Source: Paragordius varius (Eukaryota; Animalia; Nematomorpha). Taken from it: a stretch of DNA of 64,000 nt. The notes below the pieces were generated by a model that was not told the DNA's origin, did no database searches, and saw only the letters and a program-made list of their open reading frames with translations. Location: contig OZ176051.1 in assembly GCA_964247055.1 (NCBI GenBank), positions 7,006,001-7,070,000 on the forward strand. Reading direction: 5' to 3'. Shown one piece after another: positions 9,854-59,700 of this stretch (position 1 is its first letter; each line of letters opens with the position of its first letter). Position numbers and translations under genes: made by a program.

Positions 9854-10419
9854 CTAACACTGGGATACAACACATTCATTTTAGTCCTTCGATTCAAATT
9901 GGGGTAGTTAAATATCCCAGGCATGTTAAATTAAATTCCTTAAAAATTATGAAAGGAATCGAAACCATGGCAAAATTTTGCACTTATATTACATTAATAC
10001 ACCGAAATATATAAAAAATTTTATTCAAAAATACTTGATAAAACTTTTTTTAAGCTAAAACTCAAAGGTAAAAATTTAGTCAACGTGACATGGATCAAAT
10101 TGTAAAATTAAAAAAATAATACAAAATAAACCGCTTTTTCTATTTCCATCAATGTTAGATGTAATTTATACTAAAAATTAACTTTAGTTTTACCCTTAAA
10201 ATTAAATGAAGAAGATTTGCAAAAATTTTGTAAAATAAAAATGGCGGCGTTTTTTTCAAAACGAAATTTTATCAAGATATTTTGGCTTTTTAATATAACT
10301 TTTATTAGAATAGAAGCATAAATTTAAATTGGGACAGTTTACTTTAGTAGTTATTTAAAAATCCTAACTCAAATTTAGTCTGGGATAGTTAGATAGCCCA
10401 AATTGAATCGAAGTGTTAA
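9854..10419 (-). mobile_element. Family A MITE, inverted full-length copy
   Basis: Reverse complement is collinear with 21366-21949; ends CTAACACTGGGAT and GAAGTGTTAA. Confidence 0.75.
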
Positions 10420-24905: not shown

Positions 24906-26689
24906 TCTTTATTTTTTAAAAATTACCCAATTTCGATGACTCTAAAAATTTTCGACCATACCGTACGTTTAAATAAATTTAATACAAACTTGCTTTATAT
25001 ATCTTGTTTATGATATAACTTAATGATATTTTTGAAATAAAGCATTTAGCTTCCATTAAAGAAGATTTATAGTTTTTTGTTAAGAAGCAATTGCCTCAGA
25101 AGCTGAAATAATTTTCTCAAATCATTTGTAAGAAACACAATGACAATCCTGATACATTTTTATATTTGAATATATGTTTCGGCTTTTCATACCCATCGAT
25201 TTTTGCACTGTTTTTCCATAAATTGAGTTAAATAAAAACGAAGACCATTTTTTGAGGGACACATTGGGGCAAAAATTTACATTGGTTTTTCAGAGAACTT
25301 TATCCGCCAATTTTATATTATTGCTATTCATTTGTGTTTATTTTAAACTTGATATTTTATAGATCCTATTTTTGTTTATTTTTATATTGACCAAATTTTT
25401 ATACATAACTAAATTCCTTGCCAAACCCTGTTTTTGTCTAAAATAAATTTAGTTATTGTTGTATTATCAAATGTATATCAATACCGGAAATTGAAATATT
25501 ACTATGTTGACACATACATTATTATAGATGAAATCAAATAGAATTTGAGTGATGATTAGTGGTAACCACAAATCTATCTTTGGCAAAAAACTTTCAATTT
25601 TGACGTTAAATCGATATTATTTAAAACTATGTTTTTTTTCTTCATTTTTTCATTATTTTTTAATATTATGACCACAACTAAACTACACTCTCTACTTTAA
25701 AATTATAATTTATAATTTAATTATTAACTAACCAAATAGTTTTATATATAACCTTGTATGATTTTGTTCGACAAAAATATTTCTTATTATTGTTACATAT
25801 TCTTATTTTTGATAAGCTATGTATCCACTTATGTTAATAATTTCGATTTCAACACCCACTTAAATCAGATTCGTGATGAAGGTATATTATTAGATTATAT
25901 AAAGTTAAATTAAGATATACATTGTGCGATTTGTATTCAGAAATTTAAGATTTATATTATAGGTTCTCATTTAATCTATGCTCAATTTATACCAAATATT
26001 TTTTACTTGGTAAATGAGGGAAATTATTTACATATAACATTTACAAAAAAACTCTTTAGGCTAATGATGTGATAATCTTAATATATTAGATATCTGTGCA
26101 GTCATGCAATAAAAATATACAATGTGTTGTAAAGATATTTCGCATAATATTAAATATATATAGCTAAAATTTAATAATTCATTGATAAAAATAATTATTT
26201 TTGGGTAAATGTCCCAAAGTCTTAAATTTATGATAAAATAATAATATTTGATAACATTGGACTTAAATATTAGTAAAAAAGTTTTTAAAATTACAGTTTT
26301 TAAGTTCTAGCGTAAATTAGAAAGCACTTAATCCACATAAAAAACAACTGATGTTTATTAAAATATCCGATGTCGAAATATAATTAAAAGCATTCAAAGA
26401 TTAATCATTTTTTGACATTTTAAAAAATAGCGGTTAAGTTGGAGGGTTTTAAAAACTTATTTTTCAAAGCGTGTAAAATTATTCCGAGTTAACTAAGAGA
26501 GGACGTTAGCGAATATTACGCAGATGATTAATAATACAGACCCCATTTTGTTCACCTAACATTAAACAACCATAAGACACTAGTTGATTTCGCCAAAAAC
26601 TTTTATTAAATCTGCCGAGATTTATAATAGGACCATTTGCAGAACGCATTGCCAATAGCAAAAAAGGCGAAGTGCTGGCAGAAACATAA

Positions 26690-27450
26690 TGATGAACCTG
26701 ACTTGTAAAACAAGGTTCAAAAATATTAAATGTGAAAGGGTGTGGGCGTGACCAATAACTGCTGCAAAAGTTATTGGATGATAAACTAACCCAAACTTAG
26801 CAACGATTGTCAGAAGCATCGCAAGTATCAAAAAACAATATGACGAGAAAGACCAATAAACTCTGTAAATGTGTCCCATACAATTTAAACGTAAATCAAA
26901 AATCGCAATGTAAGTTAAATCCTGTTTCAATGACACGGAAAGAAATCCTTTTTGCTTTAATTGGATAGCTTTGCTTTGTAAATTTAAAGCGGGAAAATCG
27001 GGGCGTTTGCCAATTCGTTTGATCACACCAAGGCCAAATCGCTTCGACGGGAAAACCATATGGGTCTGGTGGTACCAGATTGATATTCTGCATTATGATC
27101 TTTTAAAGTTCCGCAAGGCCTCACTAATAAATACCTAATTTAAACCATACATTAATTGAAGAACAACCGGAATAAGCCAAAAAACAGGGCAAAGTGATTT
27201 TGGACGACAAAGCGCCCTCACACATAGCGAAATCAAGGGAACATGAATATTTTTCATGAAAATCATATGGCATCCTTTGAACGCACCTGACCTGAGATCA
27301 TCTGACTAATACATATTCGAATCAATGGGGCACATTTTTGCAGAGCAGCACTCACATAGATGTTGGAAAATGGCTTCACGAATGGTTGCCCAAGTTTTTC
27401 TGGCATGGTATTCATTGTGACATGAGCGGTATGTGCAGAAGCCTATGTAC
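26690..27450 (+). mobile_element. Decayed mariner transposase (stops and frameshifts)
   Basis: Fragments LQKLLDDKLTQT*QRLSE, VPYNLN, RPNRFDGKTI.VWWYQ.DILHYDLLK, KVILDDKAPSHIAK, APDLRSSD*YIFESMGHIFAEQH and VGKWLHEW...FFWHGIH are collinear with Mos1-type transposase. Confidence 0.8.
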
Positions 27451-30261: not shown

Positions 30262-33200
30262 TCATTGCAAAGATGTATGTGGTGTACGAGACATAACAGA
30301 ACTGTGTAGGGGTGAAAAACCAACCCCAGCAGCAAAACAATTCAACATATTATTGAAATTGTTGGTGGGTGTACCTAATCCCATCATATTAACAACGGGC
30401 GCTTGATTTACATTGTTGGCTACAACAGCTTTATTCATATTAGTTATTGGGGTCGTAGAGGTGTTGTACATGAAATTGTTGGGTGTACCCATACTACTAC
30501 CCAAATTCGTCAAGAAATTTGGAAACATTTGATTCGCATTGTTTTTGTTGTTTAAAAACATAAAAGAATTACCCAATGAAGCTAAAAAATTAATAGGGGT
30601 ATTTTGTCCTACTCCTCCCGCGCCTGTCGTAACTGGTAAAGACGATGCATGTAAGGGTGAAATGTTTGTAAAAGCATTACAAGACACTAGAATTTGTTTA
30701 AGTTTTTCGATCAACGTTGCATTCTCTAACGCAAGTTGGGATGCTCTTTGCCTTAAATTTGCCAATTTGGCTTCATTAAGTTTATTTTCTTCGACCTGGG
30801 CCGATAGGCTTTGCAGGAAGGTTGTTACTATCATAACAAATTATATTATTATAATTTGAGTAAATGATTAAATAATTAAAATAGTTTCAATACTTTTAAT
30901 AATAATGTTTATCAATGATTTAATTCTGATCAATATAAAACAAAAGACGGTATAAAACCATAACATATACGGTCGAATTACATTTAACAATAACTAAAAT
31001 AGTAACTATATATTTTTGGATAACATTGCAAATATGACCGAAAATAGATGAGTTTACTTTACATACAACTTAAATAATAATATATAAAAGAGTCGATATC
31101 TAAATGCGTTAACAAAAATCTTCAGCGTAAGTTATTTGTCCCGCCGAATTTTAAGACATCATTACAATTAGTTTATAATATATATGGATTTCTAAACTAT
31201 TACACCGTATCATATTATATCTCTACTATTTTGAAAAAATAAAAAAAGATTATTTACATTTTTAATAGTTTACATATTATTATTTTAAAAGCTATCCACA
31301 TACAAATTGACTTTCATGTAATTTTATGCTTTAAAATGGCAAACGAAAAAAGGCGTAGCAATGCTTTATTAAATAAAACAGGTCGCAAAAATTCTAAAAT
31401 TCATCTATGTATAAAATTTTTCTAACTCAATAATTACAATAACAATATAATATTTAAAATAAAACAGCGAAAAAGACATATACAATCAAAAGACGCCTTT
31501 TCTCCCGGCGGTGTTTTCAAAAAAGCTTCAACGTGAGCCTGTATAACATTTTCCCAAGTTTCAGTTCCATTATTCGTGGAAAATGAATTTGTAGCATTAA
31601 CCAGCTTTTTGTTCCAACTAGATACGAAAAAAAATAAAAAGTTATTAATGAGATGGTTATATTGTATAAATTTTAATTAAAAGATAATTAGAGTTTTTTG
31701 TTGTCATATTAATTTTGTTTTTTATACTAGATTTTAATTAAAATGAGTACAAACTATATTTTGGTATCTTTGATGTTAGCGCGCTTGAAAATAGCGGTAT
31801 CATATATAGTAATATTAATGAAAACATATATTTTTATAAATTTTAAATTCATATTGAACATAAATTGGCAATATATATGCAAAGCGCTTTAACAATGAAT
31901 AGATAAATATCTGCTTAAAATCCATTCAATACATTAAATTATTAAACATCAAAAAATTATTGTTAATATAAATTGATATTAATACTAAATGACTTGTTAG
32001 TTATTTTATTCTCAATGTTTTATCTAAAAATATTACTTGAAAGAATTATTAGTTCCCAATCCAGCCATGAGTAAAGCATTACTAACAATACTACCCACAT
32101 TCGAAGACATGATATCAGATGTTGTAGAGAAGATATCTATAATTTTTTTGTAAAAAAAGTATAGGATTTAAACAAAAAATATGCTCTTTCATTGAGGAAA
32201 AAAATAAATATTCAAAACTTTGAAAACCATAAAGTAACTACTTTTGTATCCAAATAAATCTAGTGCATTTAATTGTTCATTTCCATTTATTGATATTGGA
32301 GCAGGTTCCCTAAATACAAAGTATAAAAAAATGAAAAAAATACTTAAATAATGGGCGATTTTTGCGTAAAAGGTTTATTCGATATAACATAAACTTAAGG
32401 AAGGAAAAATTGTAATTAATTAAATAAGAGCGGCCATGAATATATTTAAAATTTAGTTATTGGTTTCATAATATCAATATTAAAATTTTTGAACAATAAA
32501 ATGGTACAACATTTCAAATTGTTTAAACTTATTCCTAAATTATTTTAGAATAGCCTATAATTTTAGCCCTTTTAGATGAGCCTTTCAAAAAAATCTACAA
32601 ATTTTGTTTTGCAAACTATGGACTTTATGATGATAGTCTTAAATTCGAATAAATATTTTAGTATAACTACTATCCATAAATATTTAGGCGTTATCCTAAA
32701 AAAATATATAACCAATTTTATGTTCAAAATACCCCTTAAACGATGCTAATATTTGTTGAGATATATTATGTAAATTCCACTCATGAGATGCCGAATTTCC
32801 ATCATTGTTTGTTACCTAAATTATAAAACTACATTTTTTTGAAAAGGATAAATGGTAAGTAAAAAAATTACAGTATGAGTAAGTATATATATTGCTAGAA
32901 AGTTATTAATTATTGCCAAATAGCATGTGCAGCAAAGAGAATTGACTAATAATAATAAAAAGTGAAAAAATAACTATAAGCCAATTGCCCTTTGTTATAT
33001 ATGCTATTTGGCAATGATTAATAACTTCCTAGCAATGTATACTAATTCATACTGAAAAATGCTTATATAACAATAGAGGAATGTTATACGGTCATCCAAA
33101 TTTTAGGGTTTATTAATGTTAAGTTAATTGATATCAAATTATAAGATATTTTTATCAAAAAATTAGACAAGAGCCGAGTAGGAGATTCTTTTAAAAATGA

Positions 33201-36693: not shown

Positions 36694-39600
36694 TTTATTT
36701 ATATCAAAATCATAAAAGTTTACACAAGTCAGTCTTGATAAAATTAAAGTCCTTACTTAATTTAAGAAAGAAAAAGAGAATCTAAAGTTGTTATGATTAA
36801 TTACATACATTGATTGATATCAAAGCTATAAAATAAATATATGTTACACAACTGTATGATTACTTTGACTCCCAGTAGTATTGTGGGGTGAATTTACAGA
36901 TTTCGCAAAATCATTACCATTCCCTTTTTCCACATGATTAATATTATGATTAGCTTTATACAAATGGCTGGTTGTCGCCCCAAAATTATGTGCCATATTA
37001 GTTAAGTCAAAGTCTGGAATCAGATTGGATCCTAATCAACAATGCAACAAATTTAATTTTATAGAACATATGTAAGGAGAAAGTTTATATTTTGATAAAA
37101 CGATAAAAATCCCAAACATCGCACTATAAAATTATATGATAGATATATGTGTTCGTTAAAATTTTATCATATACAGTCAAATCTCTTTTTATGCGATGCG
37201 CACGCATAAAAAGTCATGATATAAAGTAATGTGTTTATGTATTTTTGTTAACTTTTTTGGTTCAAAGAAATCAAAAAACTTTCGTCTGCGAAAATAATTT
37301 ACTTATACAGTAAAAAATGCACGAATTCGATGCTTTTGTAATTTTACCAGTCAACAAATAATACATATAATTTAAAGATGCTATAAACATACATAAAAAT
37401 ATGATCAAAAAATGATAAATTGAAATTAAAATACAATTTTTTGGTACTTAATTCGTTTTTTTATTATTTGGAATGTTTGTATGTTTCTTACAATGATATT
37501 CAAATTAATTACGCTTTGTAAATTAAATATCAAATATGATTTAATATAAAATATATGACTTTATTGAAAATACTGGTTCGTGACTAAAAAAACTTTGATT
37601 ATATTGTGAAAAACAAATAATTTATGGATAATAAATGGCTAAATGTCAGATGAATAAACCAACAAGTACAAAATTAAAAATCCACCAATCAAAATCGCGA
37701 AAACGATGTGGTGCTTTCATAGTTTAAACTAAGAGTTAAAAATCATTATCAAAAAAAAAGTCAACGCAAAAAAGGTTTGACTGCATACATAACCCATTGA
37801 AATTCATCTCTTTATAAATTATATTGATATTAAAAGTAGAGAGTAAGGCAACTATTATTGATATAATATTTACCCATTTCTCTAAGGTATATAATAATAA
37901 CTCAAATTAAATAAAGAGGAAAAAATGGAATACTATATCAGCATTAACCTGCCCTTTCAAAGCTTGTTAAAACAATAATTTAAAAAGCCTACCAATTATA
38001 CAAGTTAGGAACTGAGACATAAACCTAAATATGAATAATCTGATCTCAATTCAACTACCCTCAATCTTATAACGAAATGCTGTGACCAAAATTTGAGAAT
38101 AAAAACTGATGAACCAAAATAAAATATTATTTGATCATTACAATTTAGTTTTATAAAAGCATAAAAATAAAAGCTTACCTTGTTGGAACTGTAAAGATTG
38201 ATTTTGTTGTTGTTGTAACATCAAAGCCGCAAAATGCGCCGCCGCGGCAGCCATTGCCGGATGTGTTTGTTGCATGTGAACAGGATTTGGATCCATTAGG
38301 TTATTAATAAAATTATTGGAGTTTAGATTTACATTAAAGTTCTCATTTTTAACAAACGATGATGGTTTACTCACAAGGGTTGTCGTACTCAACGATGAAT
38401 TATCTAATGAAGAGGGAAAATTGGAAGGACTTGTAATATTAACATTGATGTTATTATTTATATTATTGTTCATGTGATAAGGATGTTGCAATGGAGGAGG
38501 TAGGTCAATTAGACCGGCCGTAGAATCTAAAATGTTTATGGATGATAAAAGAGAATAATTTATTTAAATAAAATCAATTTAATGGTAAAACGTGGCTATC
38601 AAAGATATTAAGATTTATATGTTAGCAGTGTTTTAACAGACAGCGATAATAAAAAAAAGTTTTATTGAATCTTTAAACGACACAAAAGAAATCTCCTTAA
38701 ATTATTACAAACATTGATGGTAAAACAAAACTAACAAACTTATATCCCACATAGTAAAAAATGATAACACAACGAATAAAGAGTTTCTTCGAATACATTT
38801 TGATTTTACTGAATTGCACGAAAATACCTTCTGAAGGCAGACCCATGAAAGCCGATGTATTAGCCATATTTGCCATAATCATAGAGTTATACAATGCTGT
38901 GGCTGTCCAATAAGGTACCGACCCACCTGCTCCTCCAACATAAGCGTTAAACAGTGTTGAGGGGTCCATCAATGCATTCGCATTAACATTCATATTTTGG
39001 TTCAAACAGTGCATACCTCCTCCTAACCCTTGATTATTATTCAACATATCAGCCATAGCTGCCATATTAGAGTAAAAAGCATTAATTGCAACAGGATTCA
39101 TCCCATAACCCCCACCGCTAAAATCGGTAATTGTCTTTTTTTCTGTCGTCCCGTATTGATTGTTATCATTTATGTCATTGTTTGAACTATTCGTAATACG
39201 ATTACCATCAAAACTCTTAAATGTATCAGTATTATAACTTTGGTCTGATGTATTGACAACTGAAGAATTAACAACATCTGATTCATTAGCTTTTCTAAGC
39301 GAAGGTGTTGTCGTCGTACCTGTATCTGAAACCCCTGTGGATTTTTGTGCGGTATTTGAAATCAACACATCTAAACTAATTGGAGTGGATAAAGAGGGAT
39401 GTTTATCACTCACAATCTTATTTGTTGAAGCGCCGTCTTCTTTATTTGTAACAAGCTTATTTTCATTTCCTCCTATGGTATTTGGTGTGATATTCAAAGA
39501 TTTTTCATTACTTATGGAACTTAAAATTGCCGTGGAAATTGATGGTTTATGAATCAGAGTTTTATCTAAATCACTAAAGTTATGTCTAATATCGTTGAGA

Positions 39601-42600
39601 AACGGTCCTTTAGTAACCTCAAGAAATTTTGTAGCCTGAATATTTATGCTTTCATCTGAATTTGCTACTGTAGTTTCAACTGCTGTTGTCATCGTAGTCT
39701 TTTCAATGTTACCAGTTTTAGAAATTGTTTCCATTATAGGACTTTTAATTGATTCTTTTGTGTTAGCTCTTTTATGGTTGACTGCATCAAACAAACTTGA
39801 TAGGGAGTCATCTTCTTTGCTTAAATATCGGATGGTCATGCGTTTTTGATGTTTTGCTGGGAAATGTTCTGTATTGGATGAATCATCTGCGTTACTTTCT
39901 ACCGTAATCGTTGTGGATTTAACTGTGATGGTAGTGGATGAAGTGTAATTATCACTTGGTGTACTACTATCTAACCTATTTGAATCAAAAGAAACTGTTT
40001 CTTTGAAATTGCTATTGGATATTTCCGGTATGCCACTTGTTTCATTATCTAATGCAATAACATTATTTGTTTGTTTATTATCTATCGAATTCAAATCAAG
40101 AGATGTTATGTTGAGATCATTATTGGATGTTTCCGGGATACCACTTGTTTCAATAGTATTATCCAATGCTGTGGAAACAAGAGTGGTAAAAGAATCAATC
40201 GTTTTATTATCCATCATATTTGAATCAAGAGATGATTCTTTAAAATTATTTGTGGAATCTGGGATACCTGTTTCAATTTTATTATGTAATGGCATTGGAA
40301 CAATTGGTGTTAAAAAGTTATCGTTTGGTTTATTCTCATCTACCAAATCCGGATGAAGAGATGTTTTATCAAAATTGAATTTTGTAAAGTTACTTGTTTC
40401 TCTTGTATCTGCAGTTGAAACTGGAGTAATTATAGAATTATCATTGCTGCTACTATCTATCTTTGAATCAATGGTTACTTTTTGACTTTCCTTTCCCTGG
40501 GTTTTGCTTATTTCACTTGTCTCTAGTAGAGATGATATATATAGAGTATTACTCTTTTCCACCAAATTAAGCGGTGGAGAATCTTTGCTAAGATTAACAC
40601 ACACACTAACGGATTCAGACTTAATTTCATTATCAGATTTCGACTCCGTCTCAACATTACCAAATTTATCTGCAACTTTAACATTTTGATCAGTTTCATC
40701 TGATTTTGGTACAATAACATCGGATTTTGAGTTACTCTCGGTTGTTTTTGTAGATTTTTCTTGTGAATCAGGTTTGATATCATTCGATGATTTGGAAGAT
40801 AAGGTACTATCTGCAATTGGACCATTTGTAAATTTTATGTATTTGGCAAAGTAGGAGCTTATCACTTGTTCGGGACCGGTGTAACCTTTAAGCGAAGTTG
40901 GTTCCATTACTTTTTCATTTGCCTTGGTTTTGTCATCATTGCTAATAGTATCAGTCTTAGTGTCAAACGGTGAATCAATGATTGCTTCTTTTTTTACGGC
41001 ATGTGTAATTGTTTCATTGTTTTTATCTTGTTTCAATGTTGATTTCTCATCAGATTTAAGGATATCATGATCAATGGGTTGTTTAGCACAAGTATCCAAA
41101 AATGTGGTAGTGTTTTTATCTTTTTTAATCACCGTATTATCGCTTTTTTGATGATGTATATCTTTCATTTTTGGTTTGTTATCAATTATTTTCTCGACTT
41201 CAAGTTTATCCTTTTGACAAGAAATATCATTTTTACTAGCTGTAATCTCTTTGTTAAGGATTTTCAAAAAGTTTGTTGTAGAATTTATACGCTTCGTTTC
41301 TGACGAAGTTTTTGCAATCTTTATCTCATCAAGAGAGCGATCAACGGATATGGCATGTTCTCTTTTATGCTGACTTTTGTCTGTCGATTCATTAGCATTA
41401 GAGTTATTATTATTAATATTTAGGGATAATTGAGTTTTTAACGGATTTTTAACTGAATGGGGCTTAATTTCATTATCTAAAAATGAAAGTTTATTATAAT
41501 TGAGTATGGATGTTAAAATAATAATTTTTAATCTTATAAATGATTAAAAAAGTTGTTCAAACATATAGTTTTTTACCTTACAAAAAAGGTAAAACAATTG
41601 ATATAAATGAAAAAATAATTAAACTGTTAAAATAGCCATTTTATTAATCCTTATATTAAATAAAAACTAACCGGATTTATGTCTCTTCTTGTCAGCATCA
41701 CCACTTGAAATCTAATATTGTAAAAAAGGGTATAACAATTCAGCAAATCCAACAGATCCATTTTCAAAAAAATTATTATATTAATGACCTTTTTCAAAAC
41801 ACCACTGACATTCTCTACAGTCGCGTTAGTAGGCGAAGGACTACGCGCTTTCCGTTTCGGTATTTTATAGCTACCCGATGTTATATTGGAGGTGGATGGT
41901 AACTTAACATTTGCCAATGATAAATTATTGGTTGATGATAAATCCTTGCATTTATCCTTCGTGGAGTTATTTATTGTTTTAAGCATTACAGAAGCAAAAA
42001 TACGTTGAATTTCTTTTTGTCGTTTACGTAACTTCTCAAATTGATGTATGGTGTGGGAGTTGGTCGAGTTTGTTTCCAATTTCGATTGTGGTATTTTCGT
42101 CAACAAACTATTGTAGTTTGGCGGAGATTTAAACAAGTAGTTAAGGGTACTATCCTTGGCATCCTTCTACAGAAGTAAAACGAATAAAATTTTTAATCTT
42201 AAGAAAATTTGTTATCCCTTAACCAAGATGATTATTAGACTAACAAAGAACATAAATTTTTACTATTATAGATAATTCCATCTAGAAACCTTATAACCAA
42301 AATTTAAAAAATAATTTAATGTACACTTTCAAACCTGAGAAATATGAATCTCGCAAAAACAAATGTAAGCCGTATAAACATATTTTTTATCTTTATGATT
42401 GCTGGAACTGCCGACATCTTCTAAAGCAGTAACATTGGGTGAAAGTGAATTATCCCGATTGTTATTTACATATTTCACAAAATCCTCACTGTAAAGTAAT
42501 TTAGATTTCAAGGCACTATAGAAACGATTAATAAAATAAATTATTGAAACTTTAAAAGTTATATATACAATGGGCACCTCATAATGACCCCGATGGTGGT

Positions 42601-46600: not shown

Positions 46601-49600
46601 TTTAAAAAATATTTTATTTATTATTAATGATAAATTTTTATGTCAAATTTATATAAATATATTTTCGGGTTTTGCAAAATAAACCTTAGATATTTGACGC
46701 ATACTCACAGTTTGAAGAAAGTGTTATTACAAAGTTAATGGACGAATGTTCCACCCGACAATTAACCGAAGATGGTATACTAGAAATATACTGAAATCTA
46801 TATATAAAACATAAAAAAGACATTTTTTATTTTACAATATGAAAAAACGAATGATTATTTTTGTTTTTGGATGTTTAGAGGATCTCGAATTAGAAATTCG
46901 ATTAGCACGTTTGGAAAATTTGATGGAACGACGTTTGTTACTTCTGAATTCTGTCCTTTTAAGACAAAATCCTCACAATATTCACGAATGGCTTAAACGG
47001 GTTAAATTGTATGAAGGCAATCACGAAAAGGTTGGTACTTTTTGATTTTGATGTTTTAATTTTAGTAAAAATTAAATTTTTATGAAATAAAGGAAAAAGT
47101 AGTTAATTCTTGATTATTATATATGATTACATTTGTAAAATATAAAAGGATTATTTTACCAATAAACTCATTGTGGCTACCCAAAACATGTTTTTTTTGT
47201 AAAATTAAGGTTTAGTGGTGCTAGATTTCAATTAAATATGTTTTTTAATTTATTATAACGATCGTTTTTGAAACTCAAATGCAATATTTCAAATTATGTA
47301 ATTTAAATAAATCTTTTAATTTGCAGATAGTTGAAACGTTTGAAAGTGCCCTTAAAACTGTTAATCAACCTAAATTGTTGGTGGGACGCTTATCTGATCT
47401 TTGGATAGCATATGCCAATTATTACGAACAACAAGTATAATATTTATATAAAATTTATTTTCATATTTCAATCGCACTATTACTATATTTACTTTGAAAA
47501 ATAAATGTTGTTTCAAAAGCTTAATGAATGTGATAAATTTGGAAATTAATTATGTGTTTACATAAAACTGAGTTACTTTGTATATGTATATGAGTTCGAT
47601 ATCCATAATTAATTTTAACTTTTGTATGATAATTTAGGAAAATACTTCAGATACAGAAATTGACCAAAGCGCTACTATTCGAGATAAGGACGATATTGAG
47701 ATGAAAACCGATCAGTTTGATGAACAAAAATCTGAACAAAACATAGAAAATGTGGACAACGAAGAAACTGATTCATCTGAAGAAGGTATGTAATCCTTAT
47801 TTGTTTGCTTGAATTTTTTTAGACTTTTGATCTAATGTATAATCGGTTCACAATATGTTTTTTTGTAAAAACTATGAAACTATTTGACATAACTTTAACG
47901 TGTAAATGAACGTAATAACTAAAAATAATATAAAGTGATGTGTAAATCTTAAATTTTTCAACATTAATCACAGGCATGTTTTATGCCCCTTTTTAGAATT
48001 CATTGGCACTCTCATTCTGCCAAGAAATTTTTCTTAAATAAAATTATGCTTTATGTAATAGATGAAATTCCCGATGAAAATATTAAAAGGGGTATAACAG
48101 ACGCTAATCCTGGTGCGCAAAACCTCTTAAATGCCCGAAAGATTTGGGAAAGATCGGTCGAAGATCCAAATTACGCCAAAATTGATCATTTAGCACAAGT
48201 TTGGTGTGCATGGATAGAAATGGAAATAAAGTTTTTTATATTAATTTAATCTATTGATTTTGATTATCTATTGACAATTAAAATTTTAATATAAAATTAT
48301 ATAAATTTTGGTGATATTTTTGACGACTATTTTACTTCTCAATGCATAAGTTTTTTTTTAAAATTGCCTGATAAACCTTAATTTACCACATTTAATTAAA
48401 TCTTGCTTTCTTTTGAATCATTGTTATCCAAGTTATATTAATAAAAACTTCAAATGAAAGTTTTTTTATATACATAATAATATATTCCAATAAAAAAATA
48501 CTTGACATACTATTCCTATCTTAGATATGAAAATTATGCCCAAGCCTTAAAATTATTACAAAGAGCCACCACACCCAATCAAAACATCAATACAAATTAC
48601 TTTGATGAAACTGACATTGTCCAAAATCGGCTCTTTAAATCACTCAAGATTTGGTCACTTTACGCTGATTTGGAGGAAAGTTTTGGGACTTTTGCTGTAA
48701 TTTATAACTTTTCTAAAATAAAAATTATATTTTTAATAAATAAATATTAAAAAATGTATAAACCAATTTCTTTTGCATACCTTATAAAATTCTTATTTAG
48801 TCCACTAAAGCCGTGTATGATCGAATCATCGAGTTGCGTATAGCTACACCACAAATCATCTTGAATTATGGATTATTTTTGGAGGAGAATCGATATTTCG
48901 AAGAAGCTTTTAAGGCATATGAAAAAGGTTACTAGCATTTATTTATATACTTGACACCTTATATTTAAGTCATTAATTATTGTAAACTACTTTTTGACTT
49001 TTTTTGTTTGTATAAAAAAAACATAGGTGTTTCCCTCTTTAAATGGCCCAATGTTTATGACATTTGGAATACGTATTTAGCCAAATTCGTTGATAGATAT
49101 GGTGGTACGAAATTGGAAAGAGCACGTGATCTTTTTGAACAATGCCTGGAACATTGTCCACCCAAGTTTGCGAAATGTAATGATTAGTTTATAAAACATG
49201 ATGATATATTATATGTGGCCAAATATTTTAAAATGATTATGAGATGATTTTTCAGAATTATATTATTTTATGGATAAAATTATAATTGTTTAATGAATAA
49301 AAGTTTTACGTTATAAACCATTTTTTATATTAATATCGCAGTGGTCTAGATAACTATTTAGACTATTTTAGCACCTATTTAATTACCGATTATTATTGTT
49401 TTTTTGATTTGATAACGGTATGCTTGATAATCAAAATGCTAAAGTAATTTACTATAACATTGCGAATTATACATTATATTTAACCATTCGTTTACAACTT
49501 ACTGTAACTGTCTGCACTTTTTCGCTTAGAATCAATAATAATTCGTTATCTTGTATTTTTAGAAAATACCTTATTAATATTTCTTTAATCTTTAATTTTG

Positions 49601-51218
49601 TCCTTTTAAAAATAAATATAATGTCTCACATTTTTTTAGCCATTTATTTGTTGTACGCCAAATTGGAGGAAGATCATGGACTAGCACGTCATGCTATGGC
49701 TGTTTATGATAGAGCTACTAATCATTTACCTGCCCTTGAACGGTATGAAATGTACCTTATTTACGTACAAAAGTGTGCCGCTATTTTCGGATTACCTAAA
49801 ACACGGGCCATTTACCAAAAAGCCATTGAAAGTTTACCCAATCACCAATCAAGGTTAATATTTTTATTGAAATTTTAATGAATATCAATGATGATAATAT
49901 TTTTGATGATGAAACATAAAAATTTGGAATAATGAAAATGGGATAAAACATTGAATTTTTTTGAAACTGTATTTTGTATATCATACATCTTACAACCATT
50001 AAATTATTTAATCATCAATCAAGGTTTATATTTTATTGAAATTTTAATGAATATCAATGATGATAATTTTGATGATGAAATATAAAAATTTGGATTAATG
50101 AAAATGGGATAAAACTTAAAAAACTTTTTTAAAAACTGTATATATCAAACACCTTACAACACCATTGAAAAATTACCTAATCACCAATCAAGGTTAATAT
50201 TTTATTGAAATTTTAATGAATATCAATCGATAATATTTTTGATGATGAAAGATATAAAAATTTGGATTAGATAATACAGTAAGAAAATGAAAATGTAAGG
50301 GATAAAACATTAAAAACTTTTTTTGGAAATTGTATTTTGTATATCAAACACCTTACAACCATTGAAAAATTATCTAATCATTGATCTAGGTTAATATTTT
50401 AAATTTTTAATGAATAATTATTGTAAGTTTGATAAAATATAGAAATTTTGGTTAAAATAATACAATAATAAAATTGTAAGGGATAAAAGATTGAAAAATA
50501 AGAAATTGTCTGTTGAAACTGTATATTCTATAACCTTACAACCATTGAAAGCTTACCGAATCACCAACCTTAATTTTATTATTTGCAAATGCTCATTTTA
50601 ATATTTAATTTAAAATTTGATGAATTGTAAATAGAATTATTTTGCATTTATTATAATGCTGTATTGAATATGTAAGGGTTTGGCATAATAAATGCTCACC
50701 CTTTTCAATCATGATTCCCATGATTTAATTTAGTATTCTGTATACTGATTGCGTTGAATTATGAAATTAATGTAATACATCTCTATACTTTATTTTTCAG
50801 CCCAACCTAGGCTACATAAAAAATTAACAATCAAAAAATTGGTTAAGTTTATTAATAAATGACACTTTTTATTTTCGTTTACTCCGTATTTATAAATTTT
50901 GCGCAAGCAACATAAAATTTGTTAGTTGTTAATTTTTAATCCTAATTATTATTCGCTAAAAATAAATTCCTATTTTTTATGAATATATTATAGAGAAATA
51001 TGCCTACAATTTGCCGAATTAGAATGCAAATTGGGAGAAATTGACCGGGCACGTGCCATATATGCCCATGGTTCTCAAATGGCTGATCCTAGAGTAATTA
51101 TTAATTCCACAAAATTTTATTATTATTACAAGGAGTATATTTTTTGTGCAATGCCATATTTTAAAACTATGAATAGGTATTAATCCAATTTCACAACTTT
51201 TTTTTCTGCGTAAGCTAA

Positions 51219-51255
<37 letters not shown>

Positions 51256-52047
51256 TAAACCATTTTTAAAACCGCTGAAATAAATTATTATAAATAATTG
51301 TGTCACCGCCATATTTAAATGTTATAAAAAATTTGAAATCTTTAAAACAACATTGAAAATAAAATTTTAAAATTTACACGTTATACAGCGTAAAGATACC
51401 ATTTTTCGTTAATTTTATTTTGCTATTAAATTTGTGTGTTTTTTAGTGTTTTAACAATTTTATACCAACCACAATTATGATAAAGTTATGAATTTGTGGG
51501 AAGGGGGGCTTTCAAAAAACTGTTTCTATTTGTTTTGTTGTTATAATTTATAGACGGCAGCAGAATATTGGCAAACTTGGAAAGATTTTGAAATTAAACA
51601 TGGGAATGAAGACACTGTACGTGAAATGTTAAGAATTCGCAGGAGTGTTCAAGCGGTTTATAGCACTCATCTTAATTTCGTGGCAGCTCAAAATCAAATG
51701 GTTACAAAAGGTTTGTTTTATTTTTTCTACGATATTTCATATGTTTAGATAATACAGTAAAACTTAATTTATAAGGGAAAAACTTAGAAAGTAAAAAAAT
51801 TAATACTTTTTTATAAAAACCACGTTTTAATTGTTTACCATTCGGAAATTACACTCTCGATTCTATGTTACACAATCGTAATTACCACATAGGTTATATT
51901 ATGTGTCAAAAAATATGGTTTAAATATTAAAATTGATTATTATTATAATTTTAATTACCCTAACAGTTAAATATGTTTTTTTAATAATTTTTTACAACAG
52001 ACCCAACAACTAATGCAATGGCCGCAATGGAACAAGAAATTGAATAA
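43628..52047 (+). CDS. XAB2: Pre-mRNA splicing factor SYF1/XAB2 (HAT repeats), about 18 exons
   Basis: [12 protein letters not shown]|[21 protein letters not shown]...IPG|SYKLW...|MPRIWIEY...[19 protein letters not shown]...[27 protein letters not shown]...[21 protein letters not shown]...[19 protein letters not shown]...[10 protein letters not shown]...[19 protein letters not shown]; stop at 52045-52047. Confidence 0.97.
44920..45211. mobile_element. hAT (Charlie-like) MITE with 8-bp TSD in a SYF1 intron
   Basis: Ends TAGGGGTGTTC / GAGACACCCCTG; flanks ATCTAGAA and ATCTAGAT (the NTCTAGAN target typical of Charlie elements). Confidence 0.8.
45557..45833. mobile_element. Second copy of the foldback-like element, right TIR eroded
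   Basis: TACCATTTACAATTCAAATT start, same 21-bp units at both ends; internal segment matches the reverse complement of the collagen-intron copy. Confidence 0.65.
49823..50570 (+). repeat. Tandem array of ~170-200 bp units, each beginning with a copy of a SYF1 exon 3' end plus donor site
   Basis: CCATTGAAAGTTTACCCAATCACCAATCAAG|GTTAATAT recurs at about 49823, 49996, 50162, 50359 and 50542. Confidence 0.9.
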
Positions 52048-52179
52048 TCTAAATAAGTCCGCTTCTATTCTCTGTATATAACGATTTACTAATGCTCTAA
52101 TTGATGTTTGAAATAAATAAATTTTATTATCATTTATTTTATGTTTTCTTTCAATACATTCTTTTTGATTTAACCAATT

Positions 52180-52630
52180 TCAATTTTTGGGTTCAGTTTT
52201 AGGTTTCGTTGCACAATACTGAAATTATTAGCATTTAATCAAACCTTTAAATAGGCCACTATATGATGTAATCGTTGATCTGTGTAATCCATGTTTTCAA
52301 TTTCTGTCATATAGTCACTGATAATATCTACGCATTCGGAATAACCTCTCGTATACTGCTTATTCATCATACTTGCGATTTGATCGGCATTTATAACATT
52401 ACCTGGTATATTGATGATTTTGAAAAAATAGTTATACCTGATTGTAATACCGCAGGTCCTTTCTCCAAATACTTTAAGTAATTCATAATTGCTCTCAATA
52501 TATTTTGTGGTTCGCACTCATTTTTCTACATAATATAAATTATGAGAGATTTTAAAACGTCATGTTCAGGTAAAAATTTTTTGATTTCTTGTATCATTTG
52601 AATTAATGTTGCATCCGTGTCGGCACTCAT
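52180..52630 (-). CDS. Small HLH-Orange (Hey/HES-like) protein lacking a basic region
   Basis: Exons 52559-52630, 52438-52525 and 52245-52402 (optionally 52180-52218) join in frame through GT-AG introns of 33, 35 and 26 nt. Product: MSADTDATLIQMIQEIKKFLPEHD|KNECEPQNILRAIMNYLKYLEKG...|...KQYTRGYSECVDIISDYMTEIENMDYTDQRLHHIVAYLK. The last part matches the Orange pattern GyxEC...yL...D..r..lv.hL. Confidence 0.62.
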
Positions 52631-53757
52631 GATCAAAATCTTTATTAGTCAAATAAATTAAGATATTAACGAGTAAGCTTTTTAGAACATAAGGAATTAA
52701 TATGTTCTAAAACCATTTTTGCCAACATTTAACATAGAGTGACTGCTAAATCTAGAAACTTTTCTCTTATATATGTGTATGATTGTTAAGTTTCAAACTT
52801 TGATGATATTTTTCTTCATTACGGTCCCCCTGGAAATATTTTGAATTGGTAAAACAAAGGCTTTACACGTTCATACCAAAACTGATGTTTTATCAAGTTT
52901 GGCGTTTTGTTATGTTTTTTAGTAAAAATTTAAATTGTATGATCATTTAAAAATAAAACAATCTAAATTGTTCCATAATATACGATTACCAATAGATTAT
53001 TTTATACCTTTCCTATATTTTATCTCTCTTGAGTGTTTCAAAGATATTAGGAAGAACGGTAATATCTATGAACTTATTCAAGTATAAAATAATGGAATAT
53101 TTGTGTATAAAACTGTCTATTGATAATTGTTTTTAATCTTATTTTATTGTATTTTTTAAATTCTATCCTAAATTTAAAAGTTAATGAATCAATCTGGTAG
53201 TATATCAATCTGTAATTCAAACAACACGGGAAATTCATTCGTTTATTAAATTTTAGATTTTAGATGCCAAAAAAAAATAAGCAAATAATCACTCGCGGTT
53301 AAATTAATTTTAGTTCCAATACTTTATACATAGATTTTTACTATATACATATTTATATAGTTTACCTGTTCGAATTTTAATTTTCTTATTCACACATTTA
53401 TTTTTAAATTTATTAAAACTCAAACATAATGGGAAATAGTATCATTTTTAGGGAAGTTTAATGGATTATAATAAAATTATCAATAGGTTATAAGATAACA
53501 AAATTGCCATTGATTGATTATATTATATAATGCACCGCTCATAATTAAATCAGTATAATATGTATATAACTACATAAATGCAAAATATCGAAAAAAATCC
53601 AAATAAAATAAATTATGAATAAAAATGATTAGTTAGATTGAAAAATAGGTCAATTTACACGAATCTAAACTCAAAAAATTTTCTATTGCTTCATTGTAAT
53701 TTATATAGTATATACGTGTAAACTGCAACATAAAAAGTGATCAATCAATCAATCAAA

Positions 53758-53777: not shown

Positions 53778-56700
53778 TTAATAAACTTTGGATTTGTGAA
53801 CGTATGCTTGTTGTGGGTTTACATTTTTGGGTTGAATTTGTTGTTGTTGATGGAGTTGCTGTTGTTGTTGTTGATTATATTGCTGTTGTTGTTGACTATA
53901 TTGCATACGGGGGTCATGTGATCGGTTTCGAGGATCTTGACCCGCACCATAGGAAGAAGAGTAATACGATGTTCCGCCACTAGACTGCCCTTGGCCTCCG
54001 GGCTGGCCAGCAGCTACATATCCGTAAGGATAACTGGATCCTTGTTGACTCCCACCACTACTAGCTGCATATTGACCAGCAACACCGCTTTGACTATGTT
54101 GTCCGGCCCCTTGTTGAGAGGCATATTGTTGGGCTGAACCTGGCGGGTAATATGCACCTTGCTGTCCTAGTCCCTGTTGTTGTTGTTGTTGCTGAGAGGG
54201 ATAAGAGGGTCTTCTTGCAGCTGCCGCAGCATTATTGGGTAGTCCACCTTGAGCTGCTGTTGGAATCTGATAAGGGTACATATCTCCCCGACCTGTTGCA
54301 CCCGGATAACCAGGAGGAGGAGGAGGAGGAGCTCCACTGCCATCACGAATACAAACTTGACAGCGTGATACACGACTTCGGAGTTGTCCAGCTTTTAGGG
54401 TTTGAGCCTCGGGTTTCCTAAATTCGGCATCTCTATCAATGGTTGCTAACCAAAAACTGAGGGACGATGAGAAGTAATTGCACGTTCCCTTACCATGACA
54501 TTCTATAAAAGGTGAAGCTCGGAAATCTTCTAAGCAAGAGCCAGGAGATACTAACGATTGTCCAGTACCGTCAGCCCCGGCACCCGTATGCTAAATATGG
54601 GAAACATTAGATTTTTGAGTTGTTAAGAGCTTTTACGATAAATAATAATTTAAAATATATTATTATACCATAACAAAGCTATATCCATTCCATAGACCTC
54701 TCCATCCAGCTGGACAATTAGGTATTGTCATAGATTGGCTGTGTACTGCAATAACCTACATAGATACACACATATTATTAAACAAATACAAAAAACAGTG
54801 TGTGACCAAAATTAAAACGAATCCTGAAATTTATATATTGTAATATTAAGCGAATATACTTGAGCAGGCGTTTCACACACCACACATCGACTAATATATG
54901 GTTTAATTTCTTCAGCCGGGATCAATGACATGCTAGATTTCATTGGTTCTTCCGTAGATAACCAATAACTGTAATCATTCCTTGAGGCCACGTTACACAA
55001 ATTGTCTAGACTGCAGAAGAGGAAGGGCATAGTACTAAATTTGGTTAAACAACTTCCGGGTGAACCTAAATCTTGTCCGTGAGCTCGTTCATTGCCTTGA
55101 ACATGTAAAAGAGAATATCCTTCCCATAATGGATTCGTTCCTGATGGACATCTGGGAATCTCTGAAGATTGACTATGCCGTGTAAGGTAAAATCCACGAT
55201 TAGCGGCCGATGTTCCGGGTGGTCCTGCACTTCCAGGAAACCCGGGAGGTCCTGGGGGTCCAATTGATCCGGGAACACCTGAAAATAATTAAATGTATTG
55301 TACTTAATATTGAAAAAAAAAAGAACTGAAAAATATATAAATTGGTAAAGTTTTGATTTGCTGAGCTAGTACACCCAAAATATTATTTGAAGTGCATATA
55401 GTAAGGAAAATAAATATATCCAATTATATCCCATTATAAATTCCATCGATACGATTTAAGTTTTATACTGTGTAGATATTTTACCTTCGTATCCAGGTAA
55501 TCCAGGTTCACCTTTACCGCCAGGCATACCTGGTACCCCAGGTAATCCCGAAGGCCCAGGTTCGCCTTTGGGTCCAATGAAACCAGGAAGTCCAGGAGGT
55601 CCGGGTTTTCCAGGTTGACCGGGTGGACCTTGTAGTCCAGGCATCCCGGGTTCTCCTTTAGGTCCTTGAATCAACATGTTGGAAGCTATGGTTGGGCTTA
55701 AACCAGGTTCTCCTCTTGCCCCTTAATATCATAAATTCAAATAATTAATTTTATCAATATGTAAAATGGTGGAATCCCTAAGTAGGTAAATATTGTAGAA
55801 ATTTTATATATTAAGGGTATAGCGTGTGTTACCTGGCATACCATCCAAACCAGGTGCTCCATCCTTTCCAGGTAGACCAGGGAAGCCTGGTTCACCTTTA
55901 GCGCCGGGGAAACCAGGAGCGCCATCTTTTCCAGGGAACCCTGGAGCTCCGGCTTCACCTTTAGCACCTGGGAAACCCTAAAAATAGTAAATAAATTTAT
56001 GTGGCAGTAGATTTTTTGTGTCATTATCTTTTCAAATTCTTTTAAATTATTTAAAAGGAATCGAAAAGATATATTAGAATAAGCAGATGCTTTCTTTCGG
56101 AGACTATTTAAATAATTTTGGATATTATAAAATTTCAAGAGTGTAAAATTCTCATATTTCATTGCAACATTGCAAATGAATATTATTATAGCCACAATAA
56201 AAATATAATCAAAAAATCAAATTATCATTATGATTGTTTATGCTAATTTCATTATAATATTTATGATATCTCATTAATATGTACAGGTGATCCGGGTGGA
56301 CCTTGAGGACCCGCACTACTCATACCAGGAAGACCTGCTTCACCTTTAGCTCCTGGTAATCCAGACAAACCGGGGAAACCGGGATTACCTTTAGGTCCAA
56401 CAGGACCGGGTAAACCTAGAAAAGTAATAGCGTTACTAAATTTACTACGACAAAGGATGAGGGAGATATTTATTCGATATTCTGTTTACATACCTGGGGC
56501 TCCCGGAAAACCAGCATCTCCTTTTTGACCAGGGAATCCAGGGGCTCCCTGTAAACCAGCCCCTGGTAATCCGGGCAAACCATCCTTACCAGGATAACCG
56601 GCATCTCCCTTTTCACCTTTCTGGCCAGGCATACCTGCCAGTCCTGGGAAACCAGGTTCGCCTTGTAAACCGGGTGCACCTAAAAATATTAGATAATATA

Positions 56701-59700
56701 TATGATGCATGATTATGAAAATCATCATCGTAATTTTATACCATACTGAAAAAAATAAATACATTAAATAATCGTGTGTTTTACCTGGAGTCCCAGGTGC
56801 GCCAGATAATCCATCTAATCCTGGTGCTCCCATGGGCCCAGCTGGACCTGGCAAACCATCTAATCCGGGTAAACCGTTAAGACCAGGGTTTCCCTTTTGA
56901 CCGGGAAGTCCGGGTAATCCGGCCAGCCCTGGTTCGCCTTTGGCTCCAGGCGCACCAGGGAATCCTGGGGCCCCATCTTTTCCAGGAGCTCCCATTGGTC
57001 CAGGCGGAGCCGGCATACCTATTACAAAAGTAATGAATTTTCACAAACTGTTTCCCCCATTTTTATGTAGTTTGCAGCTTAATGTTTTCATAACCCGGAA
57101 GCGTTATAACAAAAAACGCGTAATATAATTAGATTTAAGAATCACTGCAAGTACTAATTTTTAATATATTGTAATTACCAGGTGCACCAACTTCTCCCTT
57201 TTTGCCAGGGAGTCCAGGTTGTCCCGATAAACCATCCAAGCCTCTGTCACCTTTTTGCCCAGGATAGCCATTCAAGCCGGGTAATCCAGCATCACCCTGA
57301 TGTAATTAAAAGTATTACTATCAAATTTTGGGAATATTAATTTTAGGATTATTTTATTAAAATTAAAAAAAACCTTCAGTCCAGAAAGACCTGGTAGGCC
57401 TGGGTATCCAGCATCTCCTTTAGGTCCCTGTGGACCAGGTTTTCCAGGCATGCCAGGTGCACCGGCCAAACCAGGGAATCCTTGATCACCCTTTTGACCA
57501 GGATAACCTATACAAAAAAATTTTGTTTTTTATATTATAAATATAAAACTATTTAATCATAATTTAATAAGCCATTTATTTTAGATTGTGAGTGACAATG
57601 ACCAAAAAATATTTGTCGAAAGCATCATTTTATACCTGGAGCACCATCCAATCCCCGATCTCCCTTGGCACCAGGGGCCCCAGGGAACCCTGATAGTCCA
57701 TCTTTCCCGGGTTGTCCTTGTGCCCCGGGCAAACCAGGAGCTCCATATCCAGCATCTCCTTTTGGACCTTGAGCGCCTGGAAGACCTGGTAGGCCAGCGT
57801 CACCAGGAGCCCCAGCAAGACCTATCAAAAACATGTATTATGGGGAATTTTATGGAAAAATTACATAATGGTTTGAAAAACAATAGGAATATGTATAAAT
57901 TTTAACGTATCCAAGAATATCCAAATAATTGTTACCTGGGAATCCGGCCTCGCCTTTAGCACCAGGGTATCCTGGCATACCTGCTTCCCCAGGAAGACCA
58001 GGTGATCCAGGCAATCCATCCATTCCTCGTTCACCTAGTATACAAATCAAAATTTGTTACATAAATATTTTTAAATCGTGCTTCTTTATCATCTAATATG
58101 TATACTTTTTAGCTTATTCAAGGAATGCAATCGAAAATTTACCTTTAGCTCCTGGAAGGCCAGATGTACCAGGGAAACCTTCTTTTCCAGGGTAACCAGC
58201 TTCACCTTTCATACCAGGTAAACCGGGAAGACCATCTTGTCCAGCTGCTCCGGGATAACCACTAGCACCAGGATTGCCTTTTTGACCAGCCAATCCTATT
58301 TTTTTCATTTTTTAAATAGTGTTTTTTAGTTATAGATAATATAAGCAAAATATGAATTAAAATGCATTCTTTAACATCCAATCATCCAAAAAGGTATATT
58401 ATAAAAAGAAAGAATTGAAAATCATATCCATTTAAAATTTATTATGCTAATTTTCGAAAAATGGGGTTTTAATTATACTTACCAGGTAATCCAGGTAATC
58501 CTTCTTTACCAGGAGCACCGGGAGCTCCAGGAAAACCGTCTTTTCCAGGGGCTCCTGGGTATCCATCTAATCCGCGATCCCCCTTCAGTCCAGCTAAACC
58601 AGGGAAACCAGGTTCGCCTTTGGCTCCGGGGAAACCAGGCGCTCCAGGAGCTCCTATCAATACAAATAATAATATAAAGGTTAGTATTTAATTGGTATAT
58701 TCGTTTGGTGTTAAAAACGGAAAATGCAGAGCAATCCATAATCAAAAAATACCAAACCGTCTAATCCTGGTGGCCCTTGTAAACCAGGTGTTCCAGGATA
58801 TCCGATACCATTATCACCTCTATCTCCCTTTTGTCCAGGGAATCCTGGCAATCCATCGGCTCCGGGAAATCCTATTGCGGGATTTTAAACAAATATGATT
58901 TCAAGTTTTAAGCAATAAAAAAGGTTAATATTTCTTCAAAAAAGTCATACCGGGTTCCCCTTGTTTACCAGGCAAACCGGGAGCTCCGGGTAGACCATCT
59001 TTTCCAGGGTAACCTGAATCACCCTTTTGACCCGGAAGACCGGGAAGTCCTGGTGTGCCTTGCACTTGATTAACTGCACCTGGAGGTCCAGGATTACCCT
59101 AAATATTATAAAAATTCAATTAGAAAACGTATAAAATAATATTTGTTATGTTTTTATATGCTTATTTAATAAGAAGATTTAGACAAGAATAGATATGACC
59201 GACTTGATCCACATAACCATTCAATTTACCTTTTGTCCAGGCATTCCCATTAAACCTGGTTCACCAGGTGCACCCATGAGTCCAGGCGTACCAGGATTTC
59301 CAGGAAGACCAGCTAAGCCGGGGAAACCTTTATCCCCAGGGGGACCTCTTAAACCTGCACTTGCTTGTCCAGGTAAACCAGGGGGTCCTTGAAGACCAGG
59401 TAATCCATCTATACCAGGTTTTCCGGGTTGACCAGGAGAACCTATACGACATAACATAAACAAGCATTAGATTTGAGATAATTAAAGACAAATTGTTTTA
59501 ATATAATGTGACTTTTATATAATAATCCAACCAAAATATACCGGAAAGTCCAGGGAAACCAGCGTCTCCTTTAGGTCCAGGTAAGCCAGGCGCTCCTGCT
59601 AAACCCGGGTATTGATCCAATCTAGCGGGTTCACCCTTAGCACCTGGGAATCCAGGTGCCCCAGGTAAGCCAGGCAATCCAGGTTCTCCCTTAGGACCAG

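Follow-up and report, generated by a model that had tools for sequence, protein, structure and literature searches.

We found that the minus strand of the window, i.e., the whole 64,000-nt stretch of Paragordius varius DNA analyzed here, carries at positions 52630-52180 a miniature gene (below, the mini-gene) whose predicted product resembles the dimerizing part of Hes/Hey-type bHLH-Orange (bHLH-O) factors. Judged by its structure and conservation, the mini-gene is a genuine protein-coding gene under selection, common to this hairworm and to the horsehair worm Gordionus sp. m RMFG-2023. The reading that we favor, with moderate confidence, is that the product is a cut-down descendant of a Hes/Hey-type bHLH-O gene, partnering bHLH-O factors as a decoy or modulator. 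The evidence comes from the conservation of the gene in Gordionus, from profile matches of its Orange-like block, from the layout of its N-terminal half and introns, and from the parts that both orthologs are missing.

Structure of the mini-gene

The mini-gene consists of four exons that join in frame across three GT-AG introns of 33, 35 and 26 nt (Table 1), with a predicted product of 118 aa. When intron 3 is retained, the protein has 107 aa and ends after one extra Val. An earlier note on this DNA had proposed three or four exons joining in frame into 107–118 aa; its coordinates and both lengths were reproduced, and every peptide block that it cited is present in the translated exons. Retention of intron 1 brings a stop codon into frame. 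Upstream of the ATG, an in-frame TGA is located at 52651-52649, at a distance of seven codons, and an AG dinucleotide at 52641-52640. No ORF resembling a basic region was detected in the 1.1 kb between the mini-gene and the upstream collagen gene. GC content is 29% in the window and 26.9% in the Gordionus assembly.

Table 1. Features of the mini-gene and its immediate surroundings (positions in the window)
Feature	Position	Strand	Length, phase and content
Exon 1 (CDS)	52559..52630	-	24 codons, ATG start, phase-0 end; acidic N-terminus without K/R, putative helix 1 ending in Pro
Intron 1	52526..52558	-	33 nt, GT..AG, phase 0, within the putative HLH loop
Exon 2 (CDS)	52438..52525	-	29 codons + 1 base; remaining loop, putative helix 2 (..ILRAIMNYLKYL..), linker; phase-1 end in a Gly codon
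Intron 2	52403..52437	-	35 nt, GT..AG, phase 1, separates the HLH and the Orange block
Exon 3 (CDS)	52245..52402	-	2 bases + 52 codons; linker, then Orange-like two-helix block
Candidate intron 3	52219..52244	-	26 nt, GT..AG, phase 0, immediately past ..YLK; unspliced gives V-stop
Candidate exon 4	52180..52218	-	12 codons + TGA; Lys/Pro-rich tail, without WRPW/YRPW
AATAAA polyadenylation-type hexamer	52133..52138	-	Putative; 42 nt past the stop; such strings are common in AT-rich DNA
TATA-like string TATATAAG	52766..52773	-	Putative; 136 nt upstream of the ATG; weak in AT-rich DNA

No RNA run was found to contain the mini-gene stretch; four sequencing runs matching it are DNA contigs in which introns and spacers are covered and no joints occur, and we infer the splicing of the mini-gene in the source organism from the gene structure. 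The C-terminal tail of the product, including the 26-nt intron 3, is uncertain and is treated as a candidate only. In a divergent strain carrying the same species label, the segment 52372-52652 differs at 3 of 281 sites, and its flanks at 8 of 179 and 14 of 211. The lower divergence of this segment, although the numbers are small, agrees with a coding gene and points the same way.

Conservation in Gordionus

An exhaustive HMMER search with exon 3 (52 aa) against 1.84 billion representative proteins returned four matches, one of which is a true relative: XP_065319376.1, a 113-aa "uncharacterized protein LOC135927338" of Gordionus sp. m RMFG-2023. It aligns with exon 3 over residues 59-109 with 49% identity (E = 8.1e-10). 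The other three matches are tandem-repeat proteins, the scores of which were summed over many weak stretches, and were set aside as unrelated. In the word-index protein search exon 3 gave no match, and word-index searches with XP_065319376.1 and with the alignment as queries returned two Gordionus models and nothing else. The mini-gene family is known from these two species of a single phylum.

Exons 1, 2 and 3 are collinear on XP_065319376.1, with 29, 38 and 48% identity, respectively. The alignment score of exon 1 with residues 1-22 is 37 (shuffles 19.1 +/- 3.4), that of exon 2 with residues 28-56 is 54 (21.5 +/- 4.0), and that of exon 3 is 150 (24.7 +/- 4.5); for each of the three exons, 0 of 5000 shuffles reached the observed value. 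The positions and phases of all three introns are identical in the two genes. In Gordionus, intron 1 is 41 nt long (10079-10119 of the fetched locus; 33 nt in the window) and lies in phase 0 in the loop that follows helix 1. Intron 2, of about 7 kb vs. 35 nt in the window, is in phase 1 and splits the same Gly codon between the two halves of the protein. The donor of intron 3 (AAG|GTTT) is found in phase 0 at the same codon as in the window, directly past the common ..Y-L-K. Both proteins start with M-S, and in both genes the ATG closely follows an in-frame stop, from which it is separated in Gordionus by a sequence free of AG.

The Gordionus gene is represented by two separate annotations, which are identical in the first three exons and the start Met and differ in the tail. 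We observed that the last exon (locus 17379-54268) is a 5-codon micro-exon located 37 kb away in one model vs. a 59-codon exon located 1.2 kb away in the other; at least one of these two last-exon models is likely wrong. The published Gordionus annotation made use of RNA-seq (bioRxiv 10.1101/2023.06.26.546503). No further ORF of the window matches the 64-kb Gordionus locus and, as no flanking ORFs are shared, there is therefore no synteny between the two regions.

The Orange-like block

Profile scans were carried out on the single exons and on XP_065319376.1, the latter standing in for the spliced product of the window. Hairy_orange (PF07527) is the top Pfam match of exon 3 (E = 0.011, 16.4 bits), in which residues 15-51 align to positions 1-35 of the 40-position model, and the sole Pfam match of XP_065319376.1 (E = 0.032, 15.0 bits), which aligns to the same model positions. 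The scores of both orthologs are 9–10 bits under the Pfam gathering score of 25.3 bits. Since the E-values are computed over 24,736 families and this family had been named beforehand, the nominal chance for the single family is of the order of 1e-6.

A profile built from the two species was run against 177,635 PDB sequences and gave five matches at E up to 10, which include the Orange entries of HEY1 (2db7) and HES1 (7c4o). These Orange matches have E-values of about 1, and single-sequence queries behave likewise. The alignment with HEY1 2db7 spans the pattern G-[YF]-x-E-C-[VL]..[IV]..Y-[LM]..I-E..D ... L-[VI]..L. In the PDB search, the block also weakly matches ankyrin-type designed repeats and other helical proteins. 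For the Orange-like block of the earlier note, Hairy_orange is the best Pfam family in both orthologs and HEY1 and HES1 are among the PDB profile matches, but all of the scores are sub-threshold; the identity of the exon 3 block as an Orange domain is supported below the curated thresholds.

The N-terminal half

Pfam HLH (PF00010) gave no match at E up to 10 for XP_065319376.1 or for any exon, and the Atlas feature search with just the N-terminal half returned no usable match. Exon 1 shows a weak match to Pfam bHLH_PER (E = 0.024). In the ESM/Atlas neighbor search with the whole protein, the nearest cluster is HES-5 (HLH 100%, Hairy_orange 54%), with a score of 0.75, which is a lead only and falls short of a level that shuffled proteins attain too. 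AlphaFold2, run on XP_065319376.1 with the exon rows, predicted four helices at residues 2-25, 33-47, 62-92 and 99-112, with low confidence (pLDDT 51). Fold searches with this pLDDT-51 model (Foldseek against PDB and the Atlas shape search) yielded weak helical matches only and are uninformative either way.

Read by eye, helix 1 and helix 2 have the spacing and hydrophobic register of a Hey-type HLH, and the Pro that closes helix 1 is as expected there; the pattern of helix 2, ..I-L-x-x-[AS]-[IL]-x-x-Y-L-K-x-L, also suits an HLH in our reading. The lengths of the two predicted helices are likewise appropriate for an HLH. A study of Platynereis Hes genes described conserved introns within the bHLH and between that region and the Orange domain in Hes genes and Helt (PMC4172395). 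The location of intron 1 in the loop and of intron 2 in the HLH-Orange linker corresponds to this Hes/Helt pattern, the comparison being made with the verbal description in that study and not with base-level alignments. The assignment of an HLH by the earlier note therefore holds in part: position, predicted helices, register, loop intron and the weak bHLH_PER match speak for it, whereas no match was obtained with Pfam HLH or, in the Atlas, with the N-terminal half by itself. By homology the N-terminal half would be an HLH, an assignment weaker than that of the Orange block. Three methods, i.e., Pfam, the PDB sequence profile and the language-model neighbors, point to one family, which would be Hes/Hey.

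Missing basic region and co-repressor motif

In both orthologs, helix 1 is preceded by 7–8 residues only, D/E are present there, and K/R are absent from residues 1-16 of the window protein and 1-24 of the Gordionus protein. The basic region with its DNA-contacting Glu/Arg N-terminal to helix 1 is absent in both. Because the basic region abuts helix 1 and acidic residues 2-8 occupy its place, an extra upstream exon cannot restore the DNA contacts. The acidic residues before helix 1, together with the in-frame stop upstream in both species, bear out the claim that the DNA-binding residues are replaced and that an upstream exon would be no rescue.

We determined that Trp is absent from every exon and from XP_065319376.1; therefore neither protein has WRPW/YRPW. 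The C-termini, i.e., V-stop or ..TEPKN in the window and ..KVKKT in XP_065319376.1, contain no WRPW/YRPW (YxxW) motif, in line with the statement of the earlier note that the Groucho-binding tetrapeptide is missing from either possible end. The tail past ..Y-L-K is short, Lys-rich and not conserved between the two species.

Proposed origin and mechanism

In Hes-family proteins, the basic domain binds DNA, the HLH dimerizes, the Orange domain reinforces this pairing and makes it selective, and WRPW recruits Groucho/TLE; HES6 antagonizes HES1 by heterodimerizing, and Id proteins sequester their partners (PMC1950541). The mini-gene product would have kept helix 1, the loop, helix 2 and the two Orange helices, i.e., the dimerization and partner-selection surfaces, and would have lost the DNA-contacting basic region, in place of which there is a short acidic N-terminus, as well as everything past Orange, including WRPW/YRPW. 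Through its HLH and Orange surfaces, it may pair with full-length bHLH-O proteins and possibly with E-protein or proneural bHLH factors. As the product would consist of HLH and Orange only, with neither basic region nor WRPW, the expected heterodimers would have a single basic arm, only poor DNA binding and a smaller number of co-repressor motifs, and the outcome would be titration or modulation of Notch-effector output. Speculatively, the acidic residues might pair with the basic arm of the partner, in the manner of engineered dominant negatives with acidic extensions.

We infer dimerization, the partners and the direction of the effect by analogy, and the product is probably a natural decoy partner of Hes/Hey-type factors. 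Somewhat more tentatively, we propose that it may be a dedicated, genome-encoded HLH-plus-Orange decoy, representing the stand-alone dimerization surfaces of a Hey/Hes effector and poisoning or retuning bHLH-O dimers, which would make it the equivalent of an Id protein with an Orange domain. No Su(H)/CSL, N-box or E-box sites were found in the 1.1 kb upstream of the window gene or in the 3 kb upstream of its Gordionus ortholog; in the absence of upstream Su(H)/CSL sites in either species, nothing marks the mini-gene as a Notch target.

Alternative explanations

The profile evidence is confined to the Orange block, Pfam HLH gives no signal, the N-terminal half on its own matches nothing, and the N-terminal exons are the least conserved (29 and 38% identity), all of which would suit an Orange-domain adaptor without a true HLH. 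In such a protein, the C-terminal half would derive from bHLH-O, the N-terminal helices would no longer be, or would never have been, an HLH, and only Orange-type contacts would be made; Orange-mediated pairing is documented (PMC1950541), and the binding of the Helt Orange domain to Hes5 would be the model. We regard this explanation as unlikely, however, since the spacing of helix 1 and helix 2, their hydrophobic register and the Pro at the end of helix 1 are, in our reading, as in a Hey-type HLH, and both the loop intron and the HLH-Orange intron match the Hes pattern (PMC4172395). Exon 1 moreover weakly matches a bHLH-like family. To our knowledge, the Orange domain of known proteins follows a bHLH. 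Less likely still is a small helical protein that is specific to the lineage and has no relation to bHLH-O, in which the likeness to Orange would be a chance or convergent pattern of amphipathic helices and the function would lie elsewhere. Although all family matches are under curated thresholds, the block weakly matches ankyrin-type designed repeats and other helical proteins, and the fold searches are uninformative, it would remain to be explained why Pfam, the PDB sequence profile and the language-model neighbors agree on one family, which had been named before the search, and why both PDB Orange entries are within 5 matches from 177,635 sequences. Domain order, spacing and intron placement likewise fit bHLH-O.

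An artefact seems very improbable, whether in the form of ORFs arising by chance, of a pseudogene in decay, or of a normal but larger bHLH-O gene of which only the 3' part was recognized and the upstream exons, with the basic region, were missed. Across a protein divergence of about 60%, the two genes have retained their frame, the order of their exons and three intron phases, which rules out chance ORFs and a decaying pseudogene; the latter had been named in the earlier note as one of the findings that would overturn its proposal, and the Gordionus ortholog keeps all three properties. As regards missed exons, the AG at 52641-52640 might conceivably serve as the acceptor for one, but the ATG comes after an in-frame stop in both species, with no AG between stop and ATG in Gordionus, both Gordionus models begin at the same Met, no basic-region-like ORF occurs in the 1.1 kb before the collagen gene, and acidic residues 2-8 stand where the basic region would be, so that an extra exon would be no restoration. 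The absence of RNA support for the source organism and the uncertainty of the 26-nt intron 3 and of the C-terminal tail are the points that would favor an artefact. Descent of the mini-gene from a Hes/Hey-type bHLH-O gene is hence the reading that we retain.

Genomic neighborhood

Downstream, the mini-gene is neighbored by a convergent gene on the plus strand encoding an SYF1/XAB2-type splicing factor (last exon 52001-52047; Pfam HAT_Syf1 on 49420-49878). The stop codons of the two genes are 132 nt apart (window 52047-52180), so the 3' UTRs and polyadenylation signals of the convergent pair must abut or overlap. A perfect Su(H)/CSL-type site, TGTGGGAA, is located at 51495-51502 in an SYF1 intron, about 680 nt past the mini-gene stop; the whole 64 kb contains three sites of this type, which is the background rate and is compatible with chance. 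Upstream of the mini-gene, at 52680-52712, we observed an inverted repeat with perfect 12-nt arms (TTTTAGAACATA / TATGTTCTAAAA) separated by 9 nt, positioned 50–80 nt upstream of the ATG and downstream of the TATA-like string. It could be a leader hairpin or a palindromic factor site, and it was not seen in the upstream region of the Gordionus gene.

The upstream neighbor on the same strand, at 53778-57016, is a collagen gene (Pfam Collagen on 56486-57016). Its last ORF, at 53778-54281, encodes a tail rich in Gln, Gly, Ser and Tyr, in which the divergent strain has several 3-nt indels, which suggests an in-frame, length-variable low-complexity region. Four long ORFs of the window match no Pfam family at E 0.001, i.e., 38697-41267 (856 aa), 2127-3086 (319 aa), 30262-30834 (190 aa) and 26622-27059 (145 aa); the first of these is a large single exon. 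Scanning the window for Rfam families and tRNAs gave no match.

Significance

Natural HLH inhibitors which do not bind DNA (Id/Emc) play a central part in the regulation of class A bHLH factors. The antagonists of Hes/Hey-class Notch effectors that we know of are either full-length relatives (HES6) or an isoform (Hes3a). If our reading is true, a separate gene for HLH plus Orange would be a minimal natural tool, revealing what these two surfaces do alone, and would offer a ready-made dominant-negative design for studies of Hes/Hey. Small genes with introns of 26–35 nt escape gene finders, and the mini-protein is not among the proteins of this genome in the collection that was searched.

Comparison with known systems

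The mini-protein shares with Hes/Hey proteins (group E) the predicted order helix 1, loop, helix 2, linker and two-helix Orange-like block, the last of which aligns to HEY1 and HES1 with sub-threshold scores, and the placement of introns in the HLH and between HLH and Orange. It differs from them in being without a basic region and without WRPW/YRPW, in being unrecognized by Pfam HLH, and in ending after Orange but for a few Lys-rich residues, with a length of 107–118 aa vs. about 200–350. The end of helix 1, ..(L/I)(V/I)P, and the K-Q-G loop motif of Gordionus presumably resemble Hey more than Hes, which suggests that the parent family is Hey-like. Because there is no basic region, no match to the HLH profile and no WRPW, and the Orange match is sub-threshold, we do not file the mini-gene as a member of Hes/Hey and describe it as a probable derived descendant. 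Literature searches returned no description of a basic-less HLH-Orange architecture. Drosophila Her (CG5927) was considered as a basic-less precedent and rejected, as it is listed as a normal protein of the bHLH-Orange-WRPW type (PMC1310631).

With the Id/Extramacrochaetae proteins (group D), the mini-protein has in common that it is a small, putative HLH protein without a basic region, and its proposed action, i.e., sequestering partners in heterodimers that would not bind DNA, is theirs as well. In contrast to Id/Emc, which are without Orange, it has an Orange-like block, and its likely partners are bHLH-O factors rather than E proteins. Its sequence shows no detectable kinship with theirs. 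Id/Emc act on class A bHLH factors by sequestration. No Id or HLH profile was matched in the Pfam scan of the exons and XP_065319376.1 or in the PDB profile search.

Mouse Hes3a, in work ascribed to Hirata et al. in 2000, is reported to be without part of the basic region and to be unable to bind DNA. Hes3a thus resembles the mini-protein as a Hes-family protein which heterodimerizes without binding DNA; it is, however, an isoform of a normal gene arising from an alternative first exon, whereas the mini-gene would be a separate HLH-Orange gene in which the basic region is fully replaced. In turn, HES6 is comparable as a Hes-family antagonist which acts via heterodimers and counteracts HES1 (PMC1950541). 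Both HES6 and Hes3a keep the C-terminal region and WRPW, while the mini-protein is without both and would present the HLH and Orange surfaces alone.
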